This document shows positions 45,305-60,455 of a stretch of 64,000 bases of DNA, piece by piece (position 1 is the stretch's first letter; each line of letters starts with the position of its first letter). The stretch spans positions 237,659,827-237,723,826 of the forward strand of contig NC_052146.1 of assembly GCF_902713615.1 (NCBI RefSeq), read 5' to 3'. The notes below the pieces were generated by a model. That model did not search any database and had not been told where the DNA came from. It worked only from the letters and a program-made list of their open reading frames with translations. The stretch is from Scyliorhinus canicula. Lineage: Eukaryota. The translations under genes and the position numbers were made by a program.

Positions 45305-47034
45305 CTCAAAACAATCTTAAGAAATTTGTCAAAGGGATTCCCCTTTTGTAATATCATTTTGACTTATTCTAATGGTACTATGCTTTTCTAAGCTCAAAAG
45401 ATTTCTTTAATAATAGGTTCCAGCATTTTCTCAACAACTAATGTTAGGTTTGTAATTCACCGTTTTCTCTTTTCCCTTCTTATTTGAAAAGCGGGATAAT
45501 ATTTTGTCAATCTGGTGGGACTATTCCTGATTCTAAGGAGTTTTGGAAAATCATAGATAGCACATCCACTATTTCTTCAGCTATCTCTTTTAGAACTATA
45601 GAAGCATTATAGTGCAGAAGGAGGCCATTTAGTCTATTGAGTCAGCACCGACCCCCCGAAAGAACACCCCATCCAGGCCAACTCTCCTGCCCTGGCCCCG
45701 TAATCCCCATTACCCCACCTAATCTGCAATTTATCATGGCCAATCCATCTAACCTGCATATCTTTGGACTGTGGGAGGAAACCGGAGCACCCGGAGGAAA
45801 TCCATGCAGACATGGGGAGAAAGTGTAAACACCACACAGTCACACAATGCTGGAATTGAACCCGGTTCTTGGTTGCTATGGGGCAGCAGTGCTAACCACT
45901 GTAAAAGGAGGAGTCAGGATGATTAAGGGCCAAAAATGAGTTTTACATATAGAGACAGGGGGAATAGCTGAAGTATTAAATTAATACTTTACATTTGTGT
46001 TTTTGAAGGAAGAAGATACTATGGTGAAAGGGGAATTAATTCAGAAACTTAAAGGGTTTAAAATTAATAAGGAAGTTAGACAGGCTGTCTATATTTAAAA
46101 TTGATAAGGCACCAGCATCAGATAGAATCAAGGATACTGAGGGAAATTAACCATCACGATCTCACACTCACATTTCTGTCCTCAACCTATGCAGTGTTAA
46201 ATCCAATTCAAGCTGCAGGAACAGTGCTTTATCTTCTGATTAGACACTTTACAGCCTTCTGGACTCAACGTTGAGCCTTCTGGACTCAACGTTGAGTTCG
46301 ACAACTTTAGATCATTAACTCTGTTCTCCATTTTGAATTTCTCTTCACCGAGTTTCAGTTTGTATCTTGTTTTCATTTTATTGCTTTCATAGCTGACCTT
46401 TATTCTTCTATTAACACCTACTCTGGATCAGTGCTCTGTTTTCTTACTACTACCATTACCTCACTGTCGCCTTTTGTTCCATGACTCTTTGTTATTTTTC
46501 TCTTCCTCCTTCTCACCTATCCCAACCTTCCCTTTTGTTCCACCTGATGCCTCCCATTATGCAAAAGCATGAAACCCATCACATTTCTACCTCTCTTCAG
46601 TTCCAAAGACGAGTCATATTGGACTTTAAATGTTAACTCTGGTTTTTCTCCACGGATGCTGCTAGACCACTGTGTTTTTCCAGCATTTTCTATTTTGATA
46701 TAAGGCTGAGAGGAGATTGTTTTGAGGGATTCAAAATCATGAGGAGCCTGGGCAGAATAGGTTGGGAGAAACTGTTTCCACTGGTAAAAGGATTAAGAAC
46801 AAGAGGACATAGATTTAAAGCAGTTGGCAAAAGAAGCAAAAGCACATGGGGTTACGGGGATAGGGTGAAGGTGTGGGCTTAGGTAGGGTGCTCTTTCCAA
46901 GGGTCAGTGCCAACTTGATGGGCAGAATGGCCTCCTTCTGCACGGTAAATTCTATGATTCCAAGCAGCGAGGGATTAAGGTCTGGAATCGACTACCTAAT
47001 AGTCTGATGAAGGCATGTTCAATCAAGACATTCA

Positions 47035-47233
47035 ATCGCTTCTCAGCCTTTTGGCTAAGATGAGCATGGGATCAGGTGTAATGCCTGGATCTGATAGTTT
47101 CTCTTGCGGGGACCATGAATTGGATTAAATTTGAATTGGTTTTTGGAGCAGGCAAGGAGCTGGATTAGGGGTTTGCCCCTCTGCAGACTCTGAGCTCTGG
47201 CTTTGTAACTCTGATAAAGTAATATTTAAAAAA
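47035..47233 (+). ncRNA. U2 snRNA-derived retroposon (divergent U2 pseudogene or U2-headed SINE)
   Basis: Starts ATCGCTTCTCAGCCTTTTGGCTAAGAT, the U2 5' end. Later U2-like blocks: ATCTGATA, TTTTTGGAGCAGG, GGGGTTTGCCCC. A-tail; TSD AATCAAGACATTCA at 47021-47034 and 47234-47247. Confidence 0.85.
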
Positions 47234-50200
47234 AATCAAGACATTCAAAAGAGAATTAAAAAATTAACAAAGTGCTGTCCGATCCCATATAACAGTGGAC
47301 ATTTTGTTTTGGGTTTTGCCAGTGTGGGCTTGTTGAGTATGGCCTGCATTCTGCCTATTACGAACAACTGAAGGATCATGCTAGTTTGAATCTGCAACTG
47401 GATAGCATTTGCTGAATAATCCTGAGTACGCTAATAGCTACAGTAGCAATCAACTTAACATAATCAACAAACTCGTAATGTGGCTCATTTACGCTTGATA
47501 GAGACATACATTCATACACAGGGACCTGTTCTTTGCAAACAAAAGGACTATGTTCAAACCTTACACCTTTTTTGAATAATGTAAGAGTTTGGTGAACCTA
47601 TATTTCCCTGTTACTCGTGATTGGTGACACCTCACCCAAACACAGTTGACTTGCCAGCCAATCTGCACCCTTTTTTGCTATTGTATAAATGATTGTGATC
47701 ACTTGAAATTTGTCAATCCTGATGAGTGCAAGATTAAAAATTTCAGAGACATGTTTCTTTTTAACAATAATTGAAACTCATTATAAATGGGAACCCAAGA
47801 GAGAAATTCTGATGATGGTTCACACCAGTGTTACCTTGTCTGCTCTTTCCATAGATACTACTTGACCTACAGAGTGTGCCCAGTAATTCTTGTTTCTGAG
47901 TTGGAATTAATGCCATTTTTGGACTTTGCACATTCTCCCCGTTTCTGCATGGATATCGCCCCACAACCCAAAGATGTGCAGGGTAGGTGGATTGGCTATG
48001 CTATATTACCCCTTAATTGGCAAAAAAGGAATTGGCTACTCTAAATTTATTCAAAAAAAGGAATTAATGGCATTTTTACTTTGAAGTGGGTATATTCTGG
48101 GATTCCTTCTGTTTTGGTCAGTGATTTGGATTTAGAGTTTGAAGTTATGGAGTTCAAATCTATAGATGATACTCAAATAGGAATTATAGCAAATAATTCT
48201 GCGAACCAAAGAATGTTGCATAGTGATTTTGATAAAATAGGGGCATGGACAAAATAGTGACAAATGGAAATCAATGTTATTAAATATAAGGTGGTACATT
48301 TTAGATACAAAATATAATGTATATTCTTTGGGCCAGCTGTACCTAGCTCAACTGCCTAATGTTGGATGATGTGGAACAGCAGAAGAATTTCAGGATTCAG
48401 GTTCACAAGACGTTTAGAACAACACCTCAAATGGACAAGGCTACTAATAAAGCTAAAAGAATGCTGCTTTTTTGACAAGCGATAGGGAATATAAAATTTG
48501 TGAGGTAATTGTGAATTTACATAAAACCTCAACAAGAGTAGTTTTGGGCACCATGCTATATGAAAGATATGGAGGCAATAGAGAATGTTCAGTGCTCACT
48601 GATCTCAGTATTGAATATAACGTAAAAGTTGCCACAGTCCCAGAGGCTGCTCTCCCTTTTGAGAGCTGACTGGTGGTGATTTAACCTGAGGATCACTACA
48701 TCTCAGATGGAGCTTTTGTGAATAACCTCAGCCAGTACGGGAATTGAACCCGCACTATTGGCGTCGCTCTGCATCACAAACCAGCCATCCAACCAAATGA
48801 GTTAACCAACCATATACTTATCAACTGACTATCCACAAATAGCTGGGATAGGGAATTTGCTCTACATCTCCTCATCTCCATCTTAAATTTTCGATCCTGA
48901 GTGAATGACCCCTAATTCGAGACTCTTCAGCAAGGGAGAATTGTACGAGTTTCAATGAGGTCAGCTCTACACTAGAGTATAGAGGCTCATTCTACTCAAT
49001 CTCCCCTCATAGGACAGCCGTTCCATCTCAGGAATCAATCTAATGAGGATTGGACAGTCAAGTCACGAGGAAACAAAGGCATGGACTGAGGGTTTCAACA
49101 GCAGGAAAGCTGAAGCAGGGCAGAGTTAGGCGATGTTACAAAGCTGGGGGTAGGTGGTATCTGTAGTATGTACAAATACAAAGAAACACTTGAAAAGTTG
49201 AAGCTCTTTTTGTTAGGAGATTGAGGTGATTTAATGGTGTTTAAAATATAGGATGGAATAGAACAGAAATAGAACATTTTCAGTGATTGAGGGTTCTCAC
49301 GGTAGCACAGTGATTTGCACTGTTGCTTCACAGCGCCAGGGTCCCAGGTTCGATTCCCGGCTTGGGTTACTGTCTGTGCAGAGTCTGCACGGTTTCCCTG
49401 TGTCTGCGTGGGTTTCCTCTGGGTGCTCCGGTTTCCCCTCACAAGTCCCGAAAGACGTGCTGTTCGGTGAATTAGACATTCTAAATTCTCCCTCTGTGTA
49501 CCCAAACAGGCGCCAGAATGTGGCGAACAAGGACTTTTCACAGTAACTTAATTGCAGTGTTAATGTAAGCCTACCTGTGACAATAAACATTATTAATTAA
49601 TTAATTTAATTTAATTTAGAATCATAGAATCACTACAGTGCAGAAGGAGGCCATTCAGCCTATTGAGTCTGCACCAACCCCCCCACCCCCCCCAGAGAAT
49701 ATCCAGGCCCATGCCCCCTCCCCATCCCCGCAACCCCACTTAATCTTGTGGGACTCTAAGGGACAATTTATCATGGCCAATCCACCTAACCTGCATGTTT
49801 TTGGACTCTGGGAGGAAACCGGAGCACCCGGAGGAAACCTGTGCAAACACAAGGAGATTATGCAAACTCCACACAGTCACCTGAGGCCAGAATTGAACCC
49901 TGGTCCCTGACGCTGTGAGGCAGCAGTGCTAACCACTGTGCCATCATGCTGCCCAACACTTAAATGTAAAAGATTTGGGATGGAGAATCGGAGAAACTCT
50001 TTCTAGAGAAAATTGTGATGTTTGAAATGCACCAGCAGATTTGATGATTGAAATAAGTCAATATTATGAAGACCCAATGACTTAGTTCACAAACAAGAAT
50101 GACTATGTGGGCAAGGTGTCAAATCCTGGCTGAAATAACCATAACATTGTCATCCTTTATATGAGAAGTAATCTTAATTCCACAACTCTGTCCCTATATA

Positions 50201-52995: not shown

Positions 52996-53774
52996 CCCTG
53001 TTTTGTGAGTTTAGCTGAGAGGAGTTGTCCTGCTTCCTTTTCAGCCATGGCTTTGCTGACTTGACTTACTTTCAGCCATCAGAGAGAGAGACTTTTATTT
53101 TACTTGACAGATCAGGGCTGACTGCTGCTGTCTTTCCTTGCTTCTGTGTCATGCACTCTGACGTATGCAGTACTAGTCCACACTGACCAAGTTTCCAGCT
53201 AGCTTTTTATTCCAGTCTCCTGTGTATTCTTGGAAGGCAAAAATCCACAAAACGGCTTGGGATTTAATTTACAGGATATGATTCCTACTGAGGGGATATT
53301 CAGCTTCCATTATCTCCACAGGAGTTTATAGTTGATTGCTTAGTGTCTTTGATATATCCCTGTCTGGAAAAAGGTTGTGATATTCCATTGTCACACCACA
53401 GCATTTCAGGCAGTGACTGAATTTGCATTGTCAGAGTTTACACCTCAACCATCTTTGGCTTAAAAACACATGTCTTATTTAAAAGTTCTATATGCCCTTA
53501 TTTAATCTGGGATTTTGCTTCCTTGTCATGCCAAATGGCTCATGGAGACAATAGTTTTGAATATTATTTTGGTTGTGGTAAGTTACGGTATTTTTGAGTT
53601 TTTAAGTGTCTGTTCTCTTGTGAAATTATCCAATGTTGGATACAATGCCATAGCTGTTTCCAGAATAATGAGGACATAATCTAGGCTGATCATCCAGTGC
53701 AGTACTGAAGTTCCTCGTGTGTTGTGTATTTTACAAGTATATTCTTCTGTAAATTCCTGTTTCTCTCTTTCAAG

Positions 53775-53886
53775 AAAAATAAATATAAATTTGCTCCAGT
53801 GAAACAAAAGCAAGTTAAAAAAGAAGTGGAGATAAAGCAAACAATGACTGTCTCTGAACTTGCAGAAGCAATGGATAAAGATACAG
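53775..53886 (+). CDS. MTIF2: MTIF2 exon
   Basis: tttcaag|AAA...ACA G|gtaagc, 112 nt. KKEVEIKQTMTVSELAEAMDKDT (IF2 N-terminal domain motif MTVxELA). Confidence 0.9.
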
Positions 53887-56800
53887 GTAAGCATAAAATG
53901 AATGCAATTATGCTAGTCAGAACAAGAGATGTGACATGGTTGTAGAATGCAGAAGAGCAACAACCAAGTCTAGTAAGCCTTTGCTCAATGTCCTGTGCAG
54001 CCAGTGAGCTACTTTGCCACCTCACACATCCTACAAGTCTCTGGTATAGTGCAATTCCTGAATAACCATGACATCTTGTGATGTTGCTGGCAGGCCACCA
54101 GATTTAATTACCTTGTCTAAAGCAGTACTTTTAGGCTGTTTGCAGTCAACGTTGGGATTTTGTATTATTGTGGGCACCCCAGGAGAACTGGAGACTTGCA
54201 GATTGAGGTTTTCCATTTTTACATGCCAAATTGATTTTTTGCCTGTTTACTTCGATGAGTAGAAAGCACAGAAGTGGAAACATTGTCCACAAGGTATAAC
54301 CTTGGACAAACACCAAACAAATGCAAATGGTCCAAAGATAAGAAAACAGGTCATGGATCACGTTGTTCCTAGAACTCAGATTTAGAGCATCATTAATTGA
54401 ATTATTCTTGGATGGGATGATGCATGAGGGACAAAATGCAATACTTTATCCCTATTCACTATTTTTGTTGTTCATTATTATACTTCAAGATTAAAATCAG
54501 ATTCACAGAAAGAAAAAATTCAGTCTGGTTGATGAAAAGGGAACACAGCATGTTGTACGAGTCAGGAAGGCATTTGTCTGTTAGTATTTTATTTGTAACT
54601 TTTTTACCTTCAGACTTTATTTTAAAAGTAACCCTGTAAGGTGACTGCTCAATAGGTAAGGGCATATCTCTCACTAATTTGACACTGGAAAGGAACTTGA
54701 TGCAGCATTAAGATATAAATATTTTGATGTTCTTTGTTCCTGGTCAAATGTTAATTAATGGCTCCATAATTACCAGAACGCTGCACTTTTAAGTTATTGT
54801 CAAAGGACTCTCTCAAACGCAGTGTTTTTTATGTTGCTGTCATTCCCTACATATGAGGAGGTTTAGGGGCTGGTTTAGCGCAGTGGGCTGAACAGATGGC
54901 TTGTAATGCAGAACAAGGCAGCAGCGGGAGTTCAATTCCTATACCGGCCTCCCTGAACAGGCGCCGGAATATGGCGACTATGGGCTTTTCACCGTAACTT
55001 CATTGAAGCCTACTTGTGACAAGCGGTTATTTCTGTATATTACAGTAAATTTGTTGTATTGTCATTGCTATTGCTTCCATCTTCTTCCATCGGGTAGGAG
55101 ATACAAAAGTCTGAGAGGGCAGGAAATACAAAAGTCTGAGAACATGTACAAACAGACTCAAAAATAGCTTCTTCCGTGTTGTTACCAGACTCCTAAACGA
55201 CCCTCTTATGGACTGGCCTCATCAACACTACACCACTGTATGCTTCACCCGATGCCGGTGTTTATGTAGTTACATTGTGTACCTTGTGTTGCCCTATTAT
55301 GCATATTCTTTTATTTTCATGTACTAAATGATCTGTTGAGCTGCTCGCAGAAAAGTACTTTTCACTGTACCTCGGTACACGTGACAATAAACAAAACAAA
55401 CAAACAAACATGTCGGCACAACATCGAGTGCCGAAGGGCCTGTTCTGTGCTGTACTGTTCTATGTTCTATGTTTATTATAAATTGTCTTCTGTAGTTTAT
55501 TGTGTAAGACATGGTCTGGTAGAATTTTTATTCACCTTCAGAGTCTCCCAAGGATTCATCTTTCACCCCCTCCTCTCATCTACATGGCTTCTGATCCTTG
55601 GTGCTATTCTTTATGTGTATTCAGTTTTCCTGTGTATGCTGACGATATCCAGCTAAACCTCGCTTCCACCTCTCTACTTCCCTTCTAGCCGTCAGACCGC
55701 TTGTTCACCAATTATTCTTGTTTGAGCTGCAATTTCCTCCAGCTATGCTTTGGGAAGATCAAAACCAGCCCCAATTTTTAACCTGGGGCTGGTGGGAAGG
55801 GACCATTATTTAGTCAATGTGGGACACAAGCAATTATAACTCTCAGTTCCATTTAAATGTTACTGTGCCAATTCCCACCCGAAGCTAATGGGGTTGGAAT
55901 GGATAAAAGCAAATTGCTGCAGGTGCTGAAATCTGAAATAAACTGCAGGTCACCAATTTGGACTCAAGGAAACAGGTCCTGGCGCAGTTGTAGGTACAGC
56001 AAGAAGACCCTGGGGGTGAAGGGCCCAGAAGAACGCTCCTTGTTCTGATTGACGTGGAACCATTTCAGGAGAATTAAATAACTTCCTTGGGCTGCTTCTG
56101 ACCCTTGATCCTATGTGTTATCAGCTTTCCATGATGGATCACGCAATGCAGCTGTGATCCCAAATTAAAATTTCACTGGTGTATGAATTATTGTTATTGG
56201 ACCCTGACCCGTCCAGCCTGTGGGGCAGGTAGCCTACATTTTCCGCCAAAACAGGAGTTAAATTGATGAAAGGCGTGAATACTGGGAATTCAGCAGATAG
56301 TCACTTTAACACCACAAACATGCTGCTAGGTGAACAGAGTTAAAATCATGCAGCATCATAAAATACATAATCTTGCCAACAATTCCACCCACTCCTTGGC
56401 CACTTTCTCAAGCTGAACCAAATTTTGATTTGAGTTGATTTGATTTGATTTATTGTCACATGTACCGAAGTACAGTGAAAAGCATTTTTCTGCGGCTGAG
56501 GGAACATACACAGTACGTACATAGTAGACAAAAGAATAATCAATAGAGAACATTGACAAATGGTACATCAACAAACAGTGATTGGTTACAGTGCGGAACA
56601 AGGGGCCAAACAAAGCAAATACATGAGCAAGAGCAGCATAGGGCGTCATGAATAGTATTCTTACAGGGAACAGATCAGTCCGAGGGGGAGTCGTTGAGGA
56701 GTCTTGTAGCTGTGGGGAAGAAGATGTTCCTATGTCTGGATGTGCAAGTCTTCAGACTTCTGCACCTTCTGCCTGATGGAAGGGTCTGGAAGAAGGCAAT

Positions 56801-57553: not shown

Positions 57554-60294
57554 GTAGGTTCTGTGTTATGCTCTGTTAATGTCTTGGTAATATATCAATA
57601 TTTTTAAATTGAAAAGTTCAAGCCAAATTGAAATATTTATTTTGTCTATTCTGTGCCAGTGATATCAAACCACTATAGAAAAATTGCATAAAAATAAAAC
57701 CTAATGGATCACCAGGCATCAACTTACACACTGGGTATGACAAAGAATCATAGAATTTACAGTGCAGAAGGAGGCCATTCGGCCCATCGAGTCTGCACCA
57801 GCTCTTTGAAAGAGCACCCTACCCAAGCCCACACCTCCACCCTATCCCTATAACCCAGTAACCCCACCCAACACTAAGGGCAATTTAGCATGGTCAATCC
57901 ACCTGACCTGCACATTTTTGGACTGGGAGGAAACCAGAGCATCCGGAGGAAAGCCACGCACACACGTGGAGAACGCGCAGATTCCGCACAGACAGTGACC
58001 CAAGCCGGGAATCGAACCTGGAATCCTGGAGCTGTGAAGCAATTGTGCTAACCACTATGCTGCCCATACCGTTCACCGTTCCCTATTGAACCTACAAAGT
58101 TCTCCTCACGAACGTCCGACGTCGTGGGTGAAAAATGAGAGACAGACTAGTCAAGCAGCAGCCTGAAAACAGTCATACTCACTGAATCATATCTTGCAAC
58201 CAATGGCCCAGATTCCTTCATAACTATCCCTGGAGATGTCCTGTTGCAGCTGCAGGACAAAGACACCAGAGGTGTCAGTGGTCTGGAGGGAGTGGCCCTT
58301 AGAATCCTCAGTGTTAACTCCAGACTCCATAATTCTCATGGCATTGAGTCAAACATGGACAAAGAAACCTGCTCATTACCACGTACCTCTCTCTCTCAAC
58401 TGATGAACCAGTAGTCCACCTAGTTGAACACCACTTAGAAGAAGCATTCAGGGTACAGAATGCACAGGATGTACTCTGGGTGGGGAACATCACTATCCAC
58501 AATTTTGGCCTGGATTTTCGCTCTCTCATCAGGAGTGCAGAGTCAGGACATTTCCCAGCTGTACAAACCTGACCTTGGAGAAAGTCGCCTAGAAGATCAG
58601 ATTTTGTTTCTGGGTGGTGTGTCAGGGTTCCCTGGGAGTCGGGCTGGACCACCCAGAATAAATGCAGAGGATGTCAGGTGCAGGAGCAGGCTGGGCAGAA
58701 GGCCTGCCTCAGTGCACCAACACTGTATTAAAGTTTTAAAAAGACCAATTAAAGCTTCACTCCAGTCCTCACCCCACATACATTCTCAACCACCACACTC
58801 ACTATGCCTCATCTCCGCCGCCCCATGCCACATCATGCCCTGCACTCACCCCCAGGGACCCTCACATCATTCATGCCAACCTATGCCCCAATGGCTCCTC
58901 ATATCCCCCATGCTAACCTATGCCCCTCGTACCTTCCAGGTCACCTTAAGCCTCCTGCCTAGCTCTTATGGCCCTTTATAGCCCCAAAGCCAATTTAGTG
59001 CCCATTCATACCAGCCTCTGCCCCCCACCACCTTTTGCTCTAACTCCTACCATGCCAATTCACCCAGCATCCACCATGGGCAGATCCCAGGACCTAGGCT
59101 GAGATTAAATGAAATAAAGTTCCAAGTGTCTATTGCAGACTTTATTGTTCAGAAACATTCGCATTCATAACAATCCATTTCCAACATTTATGTGCCTTCA
59201 ACTACATTATCCTTTATAAACTCTGTACTTGCTAGCATACATTGACTTCCAGTAAAACAATATCTAGAATCATAGAATCCCTACAATGCAGAAGGAGGTC
59301 AATTGGCCCTTCGAGTTTGTACCACCCCATTCTCGTAACCCCACCTAATCATTGGACGCTAAGGAGAAATTTAACATGACAAATCCACCCAACCTGCACA
59401 TCTTTGGATTGTGGGGGGAAACCGAAGCACCCGGAGGAAACCCATGCAGACACGGGGAGAACATGCAAACTCCACACAAACAGTCACGTGAGGTCGGATT
59501 TGAACGTGAGTCTCTGGTGCCACCGTGCCACCCTGGGTTTTAAAATTCTCATCCTTGTTTTCAAATTCCTTCATGGCCTCACCCATCTCAATATCTGTAA
59601 TTTCCTTAAGCCCACAAACCTTGGATATCTGCACTCATCTAATTCTGGCCTCTTGAGCATTCTCGTTTTTACCTTCTCTACCATTGCAGGCTGTGCCTTG
59701 AACTGCCTAGGTCCTAAACTCTGGTATTCCCTCTCTAAACCTCCCAGCTCCTCTACCTCACTTTGTCCTTGAAAGATGTTCCTTAAAACCCACTTCTTTG
59801 ACTGTGCTTTTGGTAGTCTACTTTAATATCCTCTTATGTGGCTCAGTGTCAGATTTCGCTTTATCAAACTCCTATTATGTTAAAGATGCTATAGAAATAC
59901 AAGCTGTTGTTGTTATCAATTGTCCCCAAGTCGGTTATTCTTTCTGGTAGTCTTTCCCCATGATGATTGTACCATATAGAAATATTATTTTGCATTTTGT
60001 TAGCTTTTCAAGACTTGGAATCATAGAATACCTACAGTGCAGAAGGAGGCCATTTGGCCCACCGAGTCTTCACCGGCCCTCTGAAAGAGCACCCTACTGA
60101 GGCCCACGCTTCTACCTTTTCCCCATAACCCCACCTAACTTCTTGGACAACAAGGGCCATTTAGCGTGGCCAATCCACCTTACCTGCACATTTTCCAACT
60201 TCTTACTAGATTCCTAATTGCTGAGGAATTAGTTAACTTACCGTGAGATTTCACCATCATCTGTGAACTAATCACTACGTACTTTCTGTTTTAG

Positions 60295-60455
60295 GCCGCA
60301 CTCAGATCCAACTGTGCTCGTTCCCAAGTCACCTGTAGTTACTATAATGGGTCACGTTGACCATGGAAAAACAACATTACTTGACAGTCTTAGGAAAACT
60401 CAGGTTGCAGCTAAGGAGGCAGGAGGTATCACTCAACATATTGGCGCATTCCTTG
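60295..60455 (+). CDS. MTIF2: MTIF2 exon at the start of the G domain; gene continues beyond the window
   Basis: ttttag|G CCG...CTT G|gtatgt, 161 nt. [18 protein letters not shown] (P-loop) and [12 protein letters not shown], diagnostic of IF2. Confidence 0.96.

Follow-up and report, generated by a model that had tools for sequence, protein, structure and literature searches.

A probable SINEU-like retroposon family derived from U2 snRNA in the catshark Scyliorhinus canicula

The DNA analyzed here, called the window, is a stretch of 64,000 nucleotides from the catshark Scyliorhinus canicula (contig NC_052146.1, positions 237,659,827 to 237,723,826). MTIF2-like coding exons lie on its plus strand at about 53750-53900 and 60270-60440, and one of them encodes ..MTVSELAEAMDKDT... 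A U2 snRNA-like element occupies 47035-47233, 6.6 kb upstream of the nearer of these exons (about 53.8 kb) and 13 kb upstream of the farther one (60.35 kb), which encodes the binding motif. The original prediction, made from the sequence alone, placed it in sense orientation in a putative first MTIF2 intron; the sense orientation and the position upstream of both exons are borne out. The copy presumably has no function in the host gene. Its parts, with the flanking duplications, are as follows.

47021-47034, plus strand: left target-site duplication AATCAAGACATTCA, an exact 14-bp match to 47234-47247, starting with AA after a pyrimidine, as at the family's other sites
47035-47223, plus strand: element body, 189 nt, from U2 +1
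47035-47061, plus strand: U2 head, corresponding to U2 bases 1-27 and including stem-loop I; 26/27 identical to the genome's own U2
47062-47087, plus strand: decayed extra U2 28-36, then the original branch-point region; family-wide, GTAGTA being changed to GTAATG
47073-47087, plus strand: hairpin CAGGTGTAATGCCTG (CAGG-TGTAATG-CCTG) holding the altered branch-point region
47088-47116, plus strand: what is left of stem IIa (3' side) and stem-loop IIb, placed by alignment to U2 and to older subfamilies
47097-47113, plus strand: stem IIb remnant GTTTCTCTTGCGGGGAC, with private changes of the window copy
47117-47139, plus strand: family-specific insertion GAATTGGATT.AAATTTGAATTGG before the Sm-like site; not in U2, present in all subfamilies
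47138-47146, plus strand: Sm-site remnant GGTTTTTGG, the U2 counterpart being GATTTTTGG
47147-47191, plus strand: stem-loop III remnant, 78% identical to U2 bases 111-146; by Infernal the upper stem is kept and the lower stem is partly broken
47168-47179, plus strand: stem III tip GGGGTTTGCCCC
47192-47223, plus strand: the 3' terminal 32 bases, ..GCTCTGGCTTTGTAACTCTGATAAAGTAAT; 30-mer count 1,611; 47% of shuffles are as similar to U2 stem-loop IV
47224-47233, plus strand: A-rich tail ATTTAAAAAA
47234-47247, plus strand: right target-site duplication AATCAAGACATTCA, a perfect 14-bp match to the left one

The insert had been predicted to start at U2 +1 with 26 of 27 bases matching, and comparison with the species' own U2 confirms this. 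The single head mismatch of the window copy is G11 to A, at a CpG; the family majority matches at all 27 bases. The predicted A-tail and 14-bp duplication are in place as well, at 47224-47233 and 47021-47034/47234-47247. So is the conversion of the branch-point motif GTAGTA to GTAATG within a hairpin (47073-47087), which is family-wide, and so is the altered Sm site, GGTTTTTGG at 47138-47146, whose five-T run would also stop RNA polymerase III. Other points needed revision. What was described as an 11-nt insertion after stem I is extra sequence, but its source is a repeated unit of U2 bases 25-36. Stem IIb was placed correctly at GTTTCTCTTGCGGGGAC, G.U pair included, but two of the changes there are private to the window copy and are not the family's. 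The stem III tip GGGGTTTGCCCC is still there, but it had been set against a U2 tip of GGAGCTTGCTCC, and the tip of the species' own U2 is GGGGCTTGCTCC. Thus, GGGGTTTGCCCC represents one loop base change and one G.U-to-G-C change.

Eleven differences set the window copy apart from the family majority, a divergence of 5.8%, and are private to it. The stem IIb remnant, which reads GTCTCTCTTGTGGGGAC in the family, holds two of them, including an extra C-to-T, and the 3' strand of stem III holds three. Four of the changes earlier cited as features of the source are private to this copy. The sequence at 47035-47233 is an old, dead, full-length retroposon copy and otherwise an ordinary insertion.

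Among all Rfam families, the sole match is to U2 (RF00004), at 47035-47227 on the plus strand, over model positions 1-192. The covariance-model check suggested in the original prediction therefore names U2 and nothing else, though at 38.2 bits (E 1.5e-05) the match falls short of the gathering cut-off, which is 46. Scores of other family members are 28-38 bits; genuine U2 genes of the catshark reach 162-192 bits. With the species' own gene (L031:1501-1691) as reference, the family majority is identical to U2 at 27/27 of bases 1-27, with identities of 54% over bases 28-66, 75% over bases 67-110, 78% over bases 111-146, and 37% over bases 147-191. Identity over U2 28-191 is 63%, and under uniform decay a perfect head has a P of about 3e-06. 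The alignments show U2 descent of the element body for approximately bases 1-150, with rearrangements common to the family. A U2 origin for the last 32 bases was considered and rejected, as their similarity to stem-loop IV was reached by 934 of 2,000 shuffles (47%); Infernal nonetheless places the loop of these bases over stem-loop IV.

The folding energy of the element has a z-score of -2.1, versus -4.5 for real U2, and 6 of 200 shuffles fold equally well. Surviving structure comprises stem I, stem IIb with one G.U pair, and the top of stem III. Stem IV is lost altogether, 3 of the 8 lower stem III pairs are broken, and the young subfamily lacks part of stem IIa. C-to-U changes opposite G keep wobble pairing automatically and are therefore no evidence of selection. 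The folding scores weakly suggest that the element RNA may retain a U2-like fold; the structured source put forward earlier fares accordingly, given damage to stems IIa, III and IV.

The window copy has many relatives. A search of the 4.22-Gb assembly with the window element gave 2,232 first-look candidates on many contigs. The 40 of these that were scored were all approximately full length and 90-93% identical to the query, with the query's own locus at 100%. With L002:1501-1690, the copy closest to the family majority, as query, 2,792 candidates were obtained. Family size was gauged by counting 30-mers over the whole genome with up to 3 mismatches, the reversed-pattern controls all giving 0. 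The counts were as follows.

Family-specific centre, including the family-specific insertion: 2,778 matches
Young-type 3' end: 1,611 matches
Young-type head junction: 829 matches
Older-type 3' end: 451 matches
Motif kept solely by the older, longer copies: 239 matches

By these counts, dispersed copies number at least about 2,800 (some 3,000 loci). Heads are rarer than 3' ends, a pattern that 5' truncation during reverse transcription gives; 5' truncation and age are judged here from motif counts and best-matching copies. An own duplication of at least 9 bp was found in 29 of 42 distinct copies (range 9-18 bp, median 13). Its first base is A in 24 of the 29; a pyrimidine usually comes before it, so that the site reads pyrimidine/AA. 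Tails of the sampled copies span 0-20 bases and are 68% A, often with a few T first. Such duplications, A tails, and sites are the signs of L1-type retroposition. All-against-all comparison of the flanks of the 42 copies found them unrelated, apart from one subfamily's 5' extension. The sampled copies differ from the family majority by 1-6%; because they are the best-matching ones, their ages are biased young, and the true mean divergence is higher.

The proposal of a SINE family is thus sustained by thousands of duplication-flanked, A-tailed copies that share the diagnostic changes at unrelated sites. The alternative of a single copy with private decay fails on the 2,778 centre matches and the subfamilies described below. 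In terms of annotation, about 3,000 U2-like loci in this genome are neither genes nor ordinary pseudogenes. A cluster of copies on contig 1 at 188-190 Mb was considered as a source array and rejected; it is one insertion in a duplicated block, with flanks 97-99% identical. In this region (about 188.0-190.0 Mb, L096-L101), at least 10 copies of one old insertion lie in a block of at least 1 kb and have the common duplication AATAACTTTGCT.

The copies differ in structure at their 5' ends. Older copies (L091-L093, L096-L101, and the second copy in L073) have a length of about 225 bases. Their order is U2 1-36, a repeat of 25-36, and then a U2-like body from base 26, with the tandem units GATCAAGCGTAG / GATCAAGCGTGAG / ATCAGGTGTAATG ahead of a stem IIa region that is still intact. 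They keep the branch-point region (GTGTAATG) and stem IIa, have one extra AATTTG unit, and end in ..GAGAAAGGAAT. In the young form, one of the units has been lost, together with 12 bases of stem IIa, and L094 and L095 stand between the older and young forms. In a dimer-head subfamily, an extra U2 1-36 precedes SINE base 3. Its junction, ..AAGCGTAG joined to CGCTTCT.., has 27 matches on many contigs, and the dimer-head copies read (L008 and L026) each have their own duplication. On contig 11 (127737236-127737335), three tandem 34-base U2 head units stand ahead of the SINE. A different kind of joint is found at L007:1700-1741 (minus strand; the same locus as L077), where canonical U2 14-58 is fused to base 1 of a full-length SINE. 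This chimera appears to have arisen when the reverse transcriptase switched templates to U2 snRNA.

The aligned copies form at least four structural subfamilies of different ages, and the 5' U2 additions are recurrent and can be passed on to daughter copies. The added U2 head units all end at U2 G36, and the element joined to them starts at base 25, 26 or 3.

Taken as a whole, the window copy is very probably a member of a SINEU-like non-autonomous retroposon family derived from U2 snRNA. Copying would be by target-primed reverse transcription, with the machinery of an L1/Tx1-group LINE that depends on poly(A). Amplification would start from a few source copies and not from every copy, since the element is without an internal polymerase III promoter and no U2 promoter is carried along into new copies. 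The internal promoter was sought and rejected, as matches to the A and B boxes were reached by 46% and 83% of shuffles, respectively. Oligo-T runs are present within the element, a T4 at bases 15-18 and a T5 at 107-111.

The search for a source gene made use of the promoters of real U2 genes, which have in common an upstream element, CTGTAAAAGAGGGAAGG, at a distance of about 35 bases, and a downstream 3' box, GGGGAATTTCAAA. The window copy has neither the U2 promoter element nor the 3' box. A genome-wide pattern of the U2 promoter element, 40-58 bases, and a SINE-type head gave 0 matches. With fixed spacing and up to 3 mismatches, the same promoter-head pattern gave 19 matches, all of them true U2 genes, which serve as positive control, and none with a SINE-type head. 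Both patterns cover the CTGTAAAAGAGGGAAGG-type element; a different promoter is found in an array on contig 26. That array is a tandem array of variant U2 genes at 12.68-13.13 Mb (L037, L039-L047, L056-L060), with a period of 970-976 bp. Its genes have C at base 23 and altered stems III/IV and still score 162-180 bits; their promoter and 3' box are unlike those of the other U2 loci, and an N gap lies at L040:2811-3010.

These results bear on a rival explanation, in which the copies are a swarm of processed pseudogenes from one variant U2 gene with an external snRNA promoter and there is no self-propagating SINE lineage. Such an origin would sit well with the lack of an internal promoter, the T4/T5 runs, the promoterless new copies, and a head identical to U2. 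Yet one gene would hardly produce at least four subfamilies of different ages, among them a 27-copy inherited extension; several successive or parallel sources would be needed. Moreover, the variant U2 gene or master locus that the original prediction offered as one possible source was not found genome-wide in linkage with the promoter element, although the same pattern recovered the 19 true U2 genes. We consider the pseudogene swarm unlikely, while noting that the distinction between it and the SINEU-like family is partly semantic.

In a second rival explanation, the product of the locus would be a functional RNA, either a variant U2 or a regulatory one. The intact head and stem-loop I and the sense orientation in a gene region would be in its favor, but the duplication and A-tail are the marks of a retrocopy, neither promoter element nor 3' box is present, 11 substitutions are private, and the branch-point region, Sm site, and stem IV are all altered. 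RNA data point the same way, with zero reads from an oligo-dT library on the unique flanks of the window copy. A functional RNA is thus highly improbable. On the element itself, oligo-dT reads are few, fall on both strands, and do not pile up at any start or end point; short non-polyadenylated RNAs would be missed by such a library. About 690 oligo-dT reads (run X22) on 47191-47223 come from one other, 5'-truncated copy, which has AAAGACCAGGATT on both sides and lies inside a well-expressed transcript.

The U2 loci of this genome also harbor a LINE, inserted at a fixed U2 position, and pieces of it are present in 12 of the 30 U2 loci examined. At the 5' junction, U2 1-36 is followed by CGCACTTGATCGG... 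The U2 promoter lies upstream of this junction at L040:2477-2512 and L039:2264-2300. The junctions at L031:2066 and in L034 are without the promoter and lie 375 and 134 bases, respectively, downstream of intact U2 genes. At the 3' junction (L040, about 552-571), ..GAATAAAGTATATTTTTTG is followed by 19 A and then by U2 from base 39 (TCTGTTCTTATCAG). ORF1 encodes a ZCCHC3-type RNA-binding domain and CCHC knuckles, and the LINE has a poly(A) tail. The pieces are at the following locations.

L040: 1-571 and 2477-2810
L039: 2264-3191
L031: 2066-2861
L034: 1-1367, minus strand
Also L048, L050-L055, and L058

Head-to-tail LINE-LINE joints occur in L048 and L055, and the first 11 bases of the LINE are an inverted copy of U2 bases 25-33.

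The non-LTR retrotransposons Keno, of the Tx1 clade, and Utopia, of the NeSL clade, target U2 genes, and in both cases U2 is reported to resume at base 39 (PMC4640811). The catshark LINE is like both on its 3' side. Its poly(A) tail and ORF1 fit Keno rather than Utopia, which suggests a Keno-like element, putatively of the Tx1 clade. The window element is distinct from this LINE and lies outside U2 genes; the one link between the two is the base-36 boundary of the head.

One may ask whether the Keno-like LINE mobilizes the SINE directly, the latter being a stringent-type SINE whose 3' end mimics that of the LINE. Both elements end in ATAAAGTA(T)ATTT followed by A's, an agreement that 36 of 3,000 shuffles score as well. 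The SINE head units end at the LINE target, U2 base 36, and crocodilian SINEU has been tied to Keno-related Tx1 elements (PMC4494074). The tail is matched equally, however, by 3.3% of random genomic 120-mers. A LINE origin of the SINE body or tail was also considered and rejected, as no significant similarity exists to the last 300 or the first 500 bases of the LINE. Furthermore, the sampled insertions are at unrelated pyrimidine/AA sites and not in U2 genes. Direct mobilization by the Keno-like LINE therefore has a low probability in our estimation. Nor do the 3' end counts (1,611 and 451) exceed that of the centre (2,778), which means that no abundant LINE shares the tail. With no significant similarity of the SINE body and tail to the LINE ends, and with the sampled insertions outside U2 genes, bulk dispersal of the SINEU-like family was probably the work of a non-specific poly(A)-dependent LINE.

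The U2 loci may have had another part in the family's history. We propose, tentatively and with considerable doubt, that source copies re-insert into U2 genes at the Keno site, after base 36, and are there transcribed from the U2 promoter at +1. Each cycle of re-insertion would add a fresh U2 1-36 head to a variably 5'-truncated element. A fixed donor end combined with a variable acceptor start fits 5'-truncated retrocopies entering a fixed target; template switching, as in L007, gives a variable donor end. Residence in U2 genes would explain why the head is perfect (27/27) when the rest is 63% identical, why added units end at G36 with varied acceptor starts (base 25, 26 or 3), why no internal promoter is needed, and why a U2-headed, Keno-like LINE is found in the same U2 arrays. 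If true, U2-gene-resident sources would answer the question posed by crocodilian SINEU, namely, how snRNA-derived SINEs originate and are transcribed.

The closest known system is SINEU-3 of crocodilians (Kojima 2015, PMC4494074), in which U2 pieces of 32 bp (5') and 83 bp (middle) are followed by a 3' end of about 40 bp that matches nothing in U2. SINEU-3 numbers about 1,600 copies; it ends in a poly(A) tail, contains an oligo-T run, and lacks an internal promoter (PMC4494074). The shark family is likewise derived from U2 alone, with a 27-36-base head, a U2-like middle, and an unassignable 32-base end. It too has an A-tail, 1,600-2,800 copies, no internal promoter, and oligo-T inside. Compared with the published description of SINEU-3, the shark family differs in its host, in retaining more of U2, and in its tandem head units. 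Ninety percent of SINEU-3 copies lie in one Mariner family, and SINEU shares its target preference (Mariner-N4_AMi) with Tx1-Mar LINEs (PMC4494074). In contrast, the flanks of the 42 shark copies have no common target, so that the Mariner preference is absent. From the distance between the hosts and the youth of the family, we infer that the shark family arose independently of crocodilian SINEU.

Repeated 5' addition of U2 or U1 has been described for SINEU-1 and SINEU-2, with subfamilies that inherit the extensions (PMC4494074). The shark family resembles them in its recurrent, inherited 5' snRNA additions. SINEU-1, however, has a common non-snRNA 3' body and SINEU-2 combines U1 and U2, whereas the shark additions all end at U2 base 36. 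Mammals have L1-made snRNA retropseudogenes and snRNA-L1 chimeras (cited in PMC4494074, PMC4476161). The duplications, A-tails, and template-switch chimeras (L007) are similar in the shark; the mammalian retropseudogenes are independent one-off copies of normal snRNA, whereas the shark copies number thousands, with common derived rearrangements and subfamilies. Unlike a classical SINE, with a tRNA, 7SL or 5S head that contains an internal polymerase III promoter, the shark element has no such promoter. And unlike a U2 snRNA gene, it has GTAATG for GUAGUA, GGTTTTTGG for the Sm site AUUUUUG, a part-deleted stem IIa, and an unalignable stem IV.

No SINEU was found outside crocodilians (Kojima 2015, PMC4494074). 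In the literature searched, there is no snRNA-derived SINE in sharks and no later non-crocodilian report, and neither SINEs nor snRNA come up in the text of the catshark genome paper. The shark family is thus a new member of a rare known kind, SINEU, new relative to the literature searched. Also new here is the base-36 rule for added U2 heads, which coincides with the Keno-like LINE site. The snRNA-headed SINEs are the one SINE class whose transcription is unexplained, as U1 and U2 genes lack an internal promoter. A second, probably independent, younger family in a shark, with its duplications, its subfamily intermediates, and a Keno-like LINE in the same genome, offers a system for testing the birth and transcription of such elements.

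The insertion in the window is also present in a second species. Contigs from two independent studies contain a 214-base piece corresponding to 47207-47420, with 6 differences. The piece spans the last 17 bases of the element, the tail, the right duplication, and the flank; its left side of the junction has 27 letters, slightly below the 31-letter criterion. Contig depths of 7.6 and 15.8, against baselines of 6.6 and 8.4, are those of a single-copy sequence. Because the contigs bridge element and flank, where an empty site would continue into the upstream flank of 47021-47034, the insertion is older than the split of the sister species. Words of the near-majority copy are present in runs of three species labels. 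The closest other copy to the near-majority copy is just 97% identical in the genome search, which found no source gene, and the family looks extinct or nearly so.

The surroundings of the window copy are themselves repetitive. At 46961-47034 and 47234-47420 the depth is 160-890, against about 7 for single-copy DNA; the SINE landed within another, moderately repeated element. Just upstream, at 46808-46960, lies a far more abundant repeat whose end at 46960 reads ..GGCCTCCTTCTGCACGGTAAATTCTATGATTC. Summed over contigs, the depth of this repeat is about 35-fold that of the SINE centre, and 700-1,000 RNA reads per bin fall on it, on both strands.
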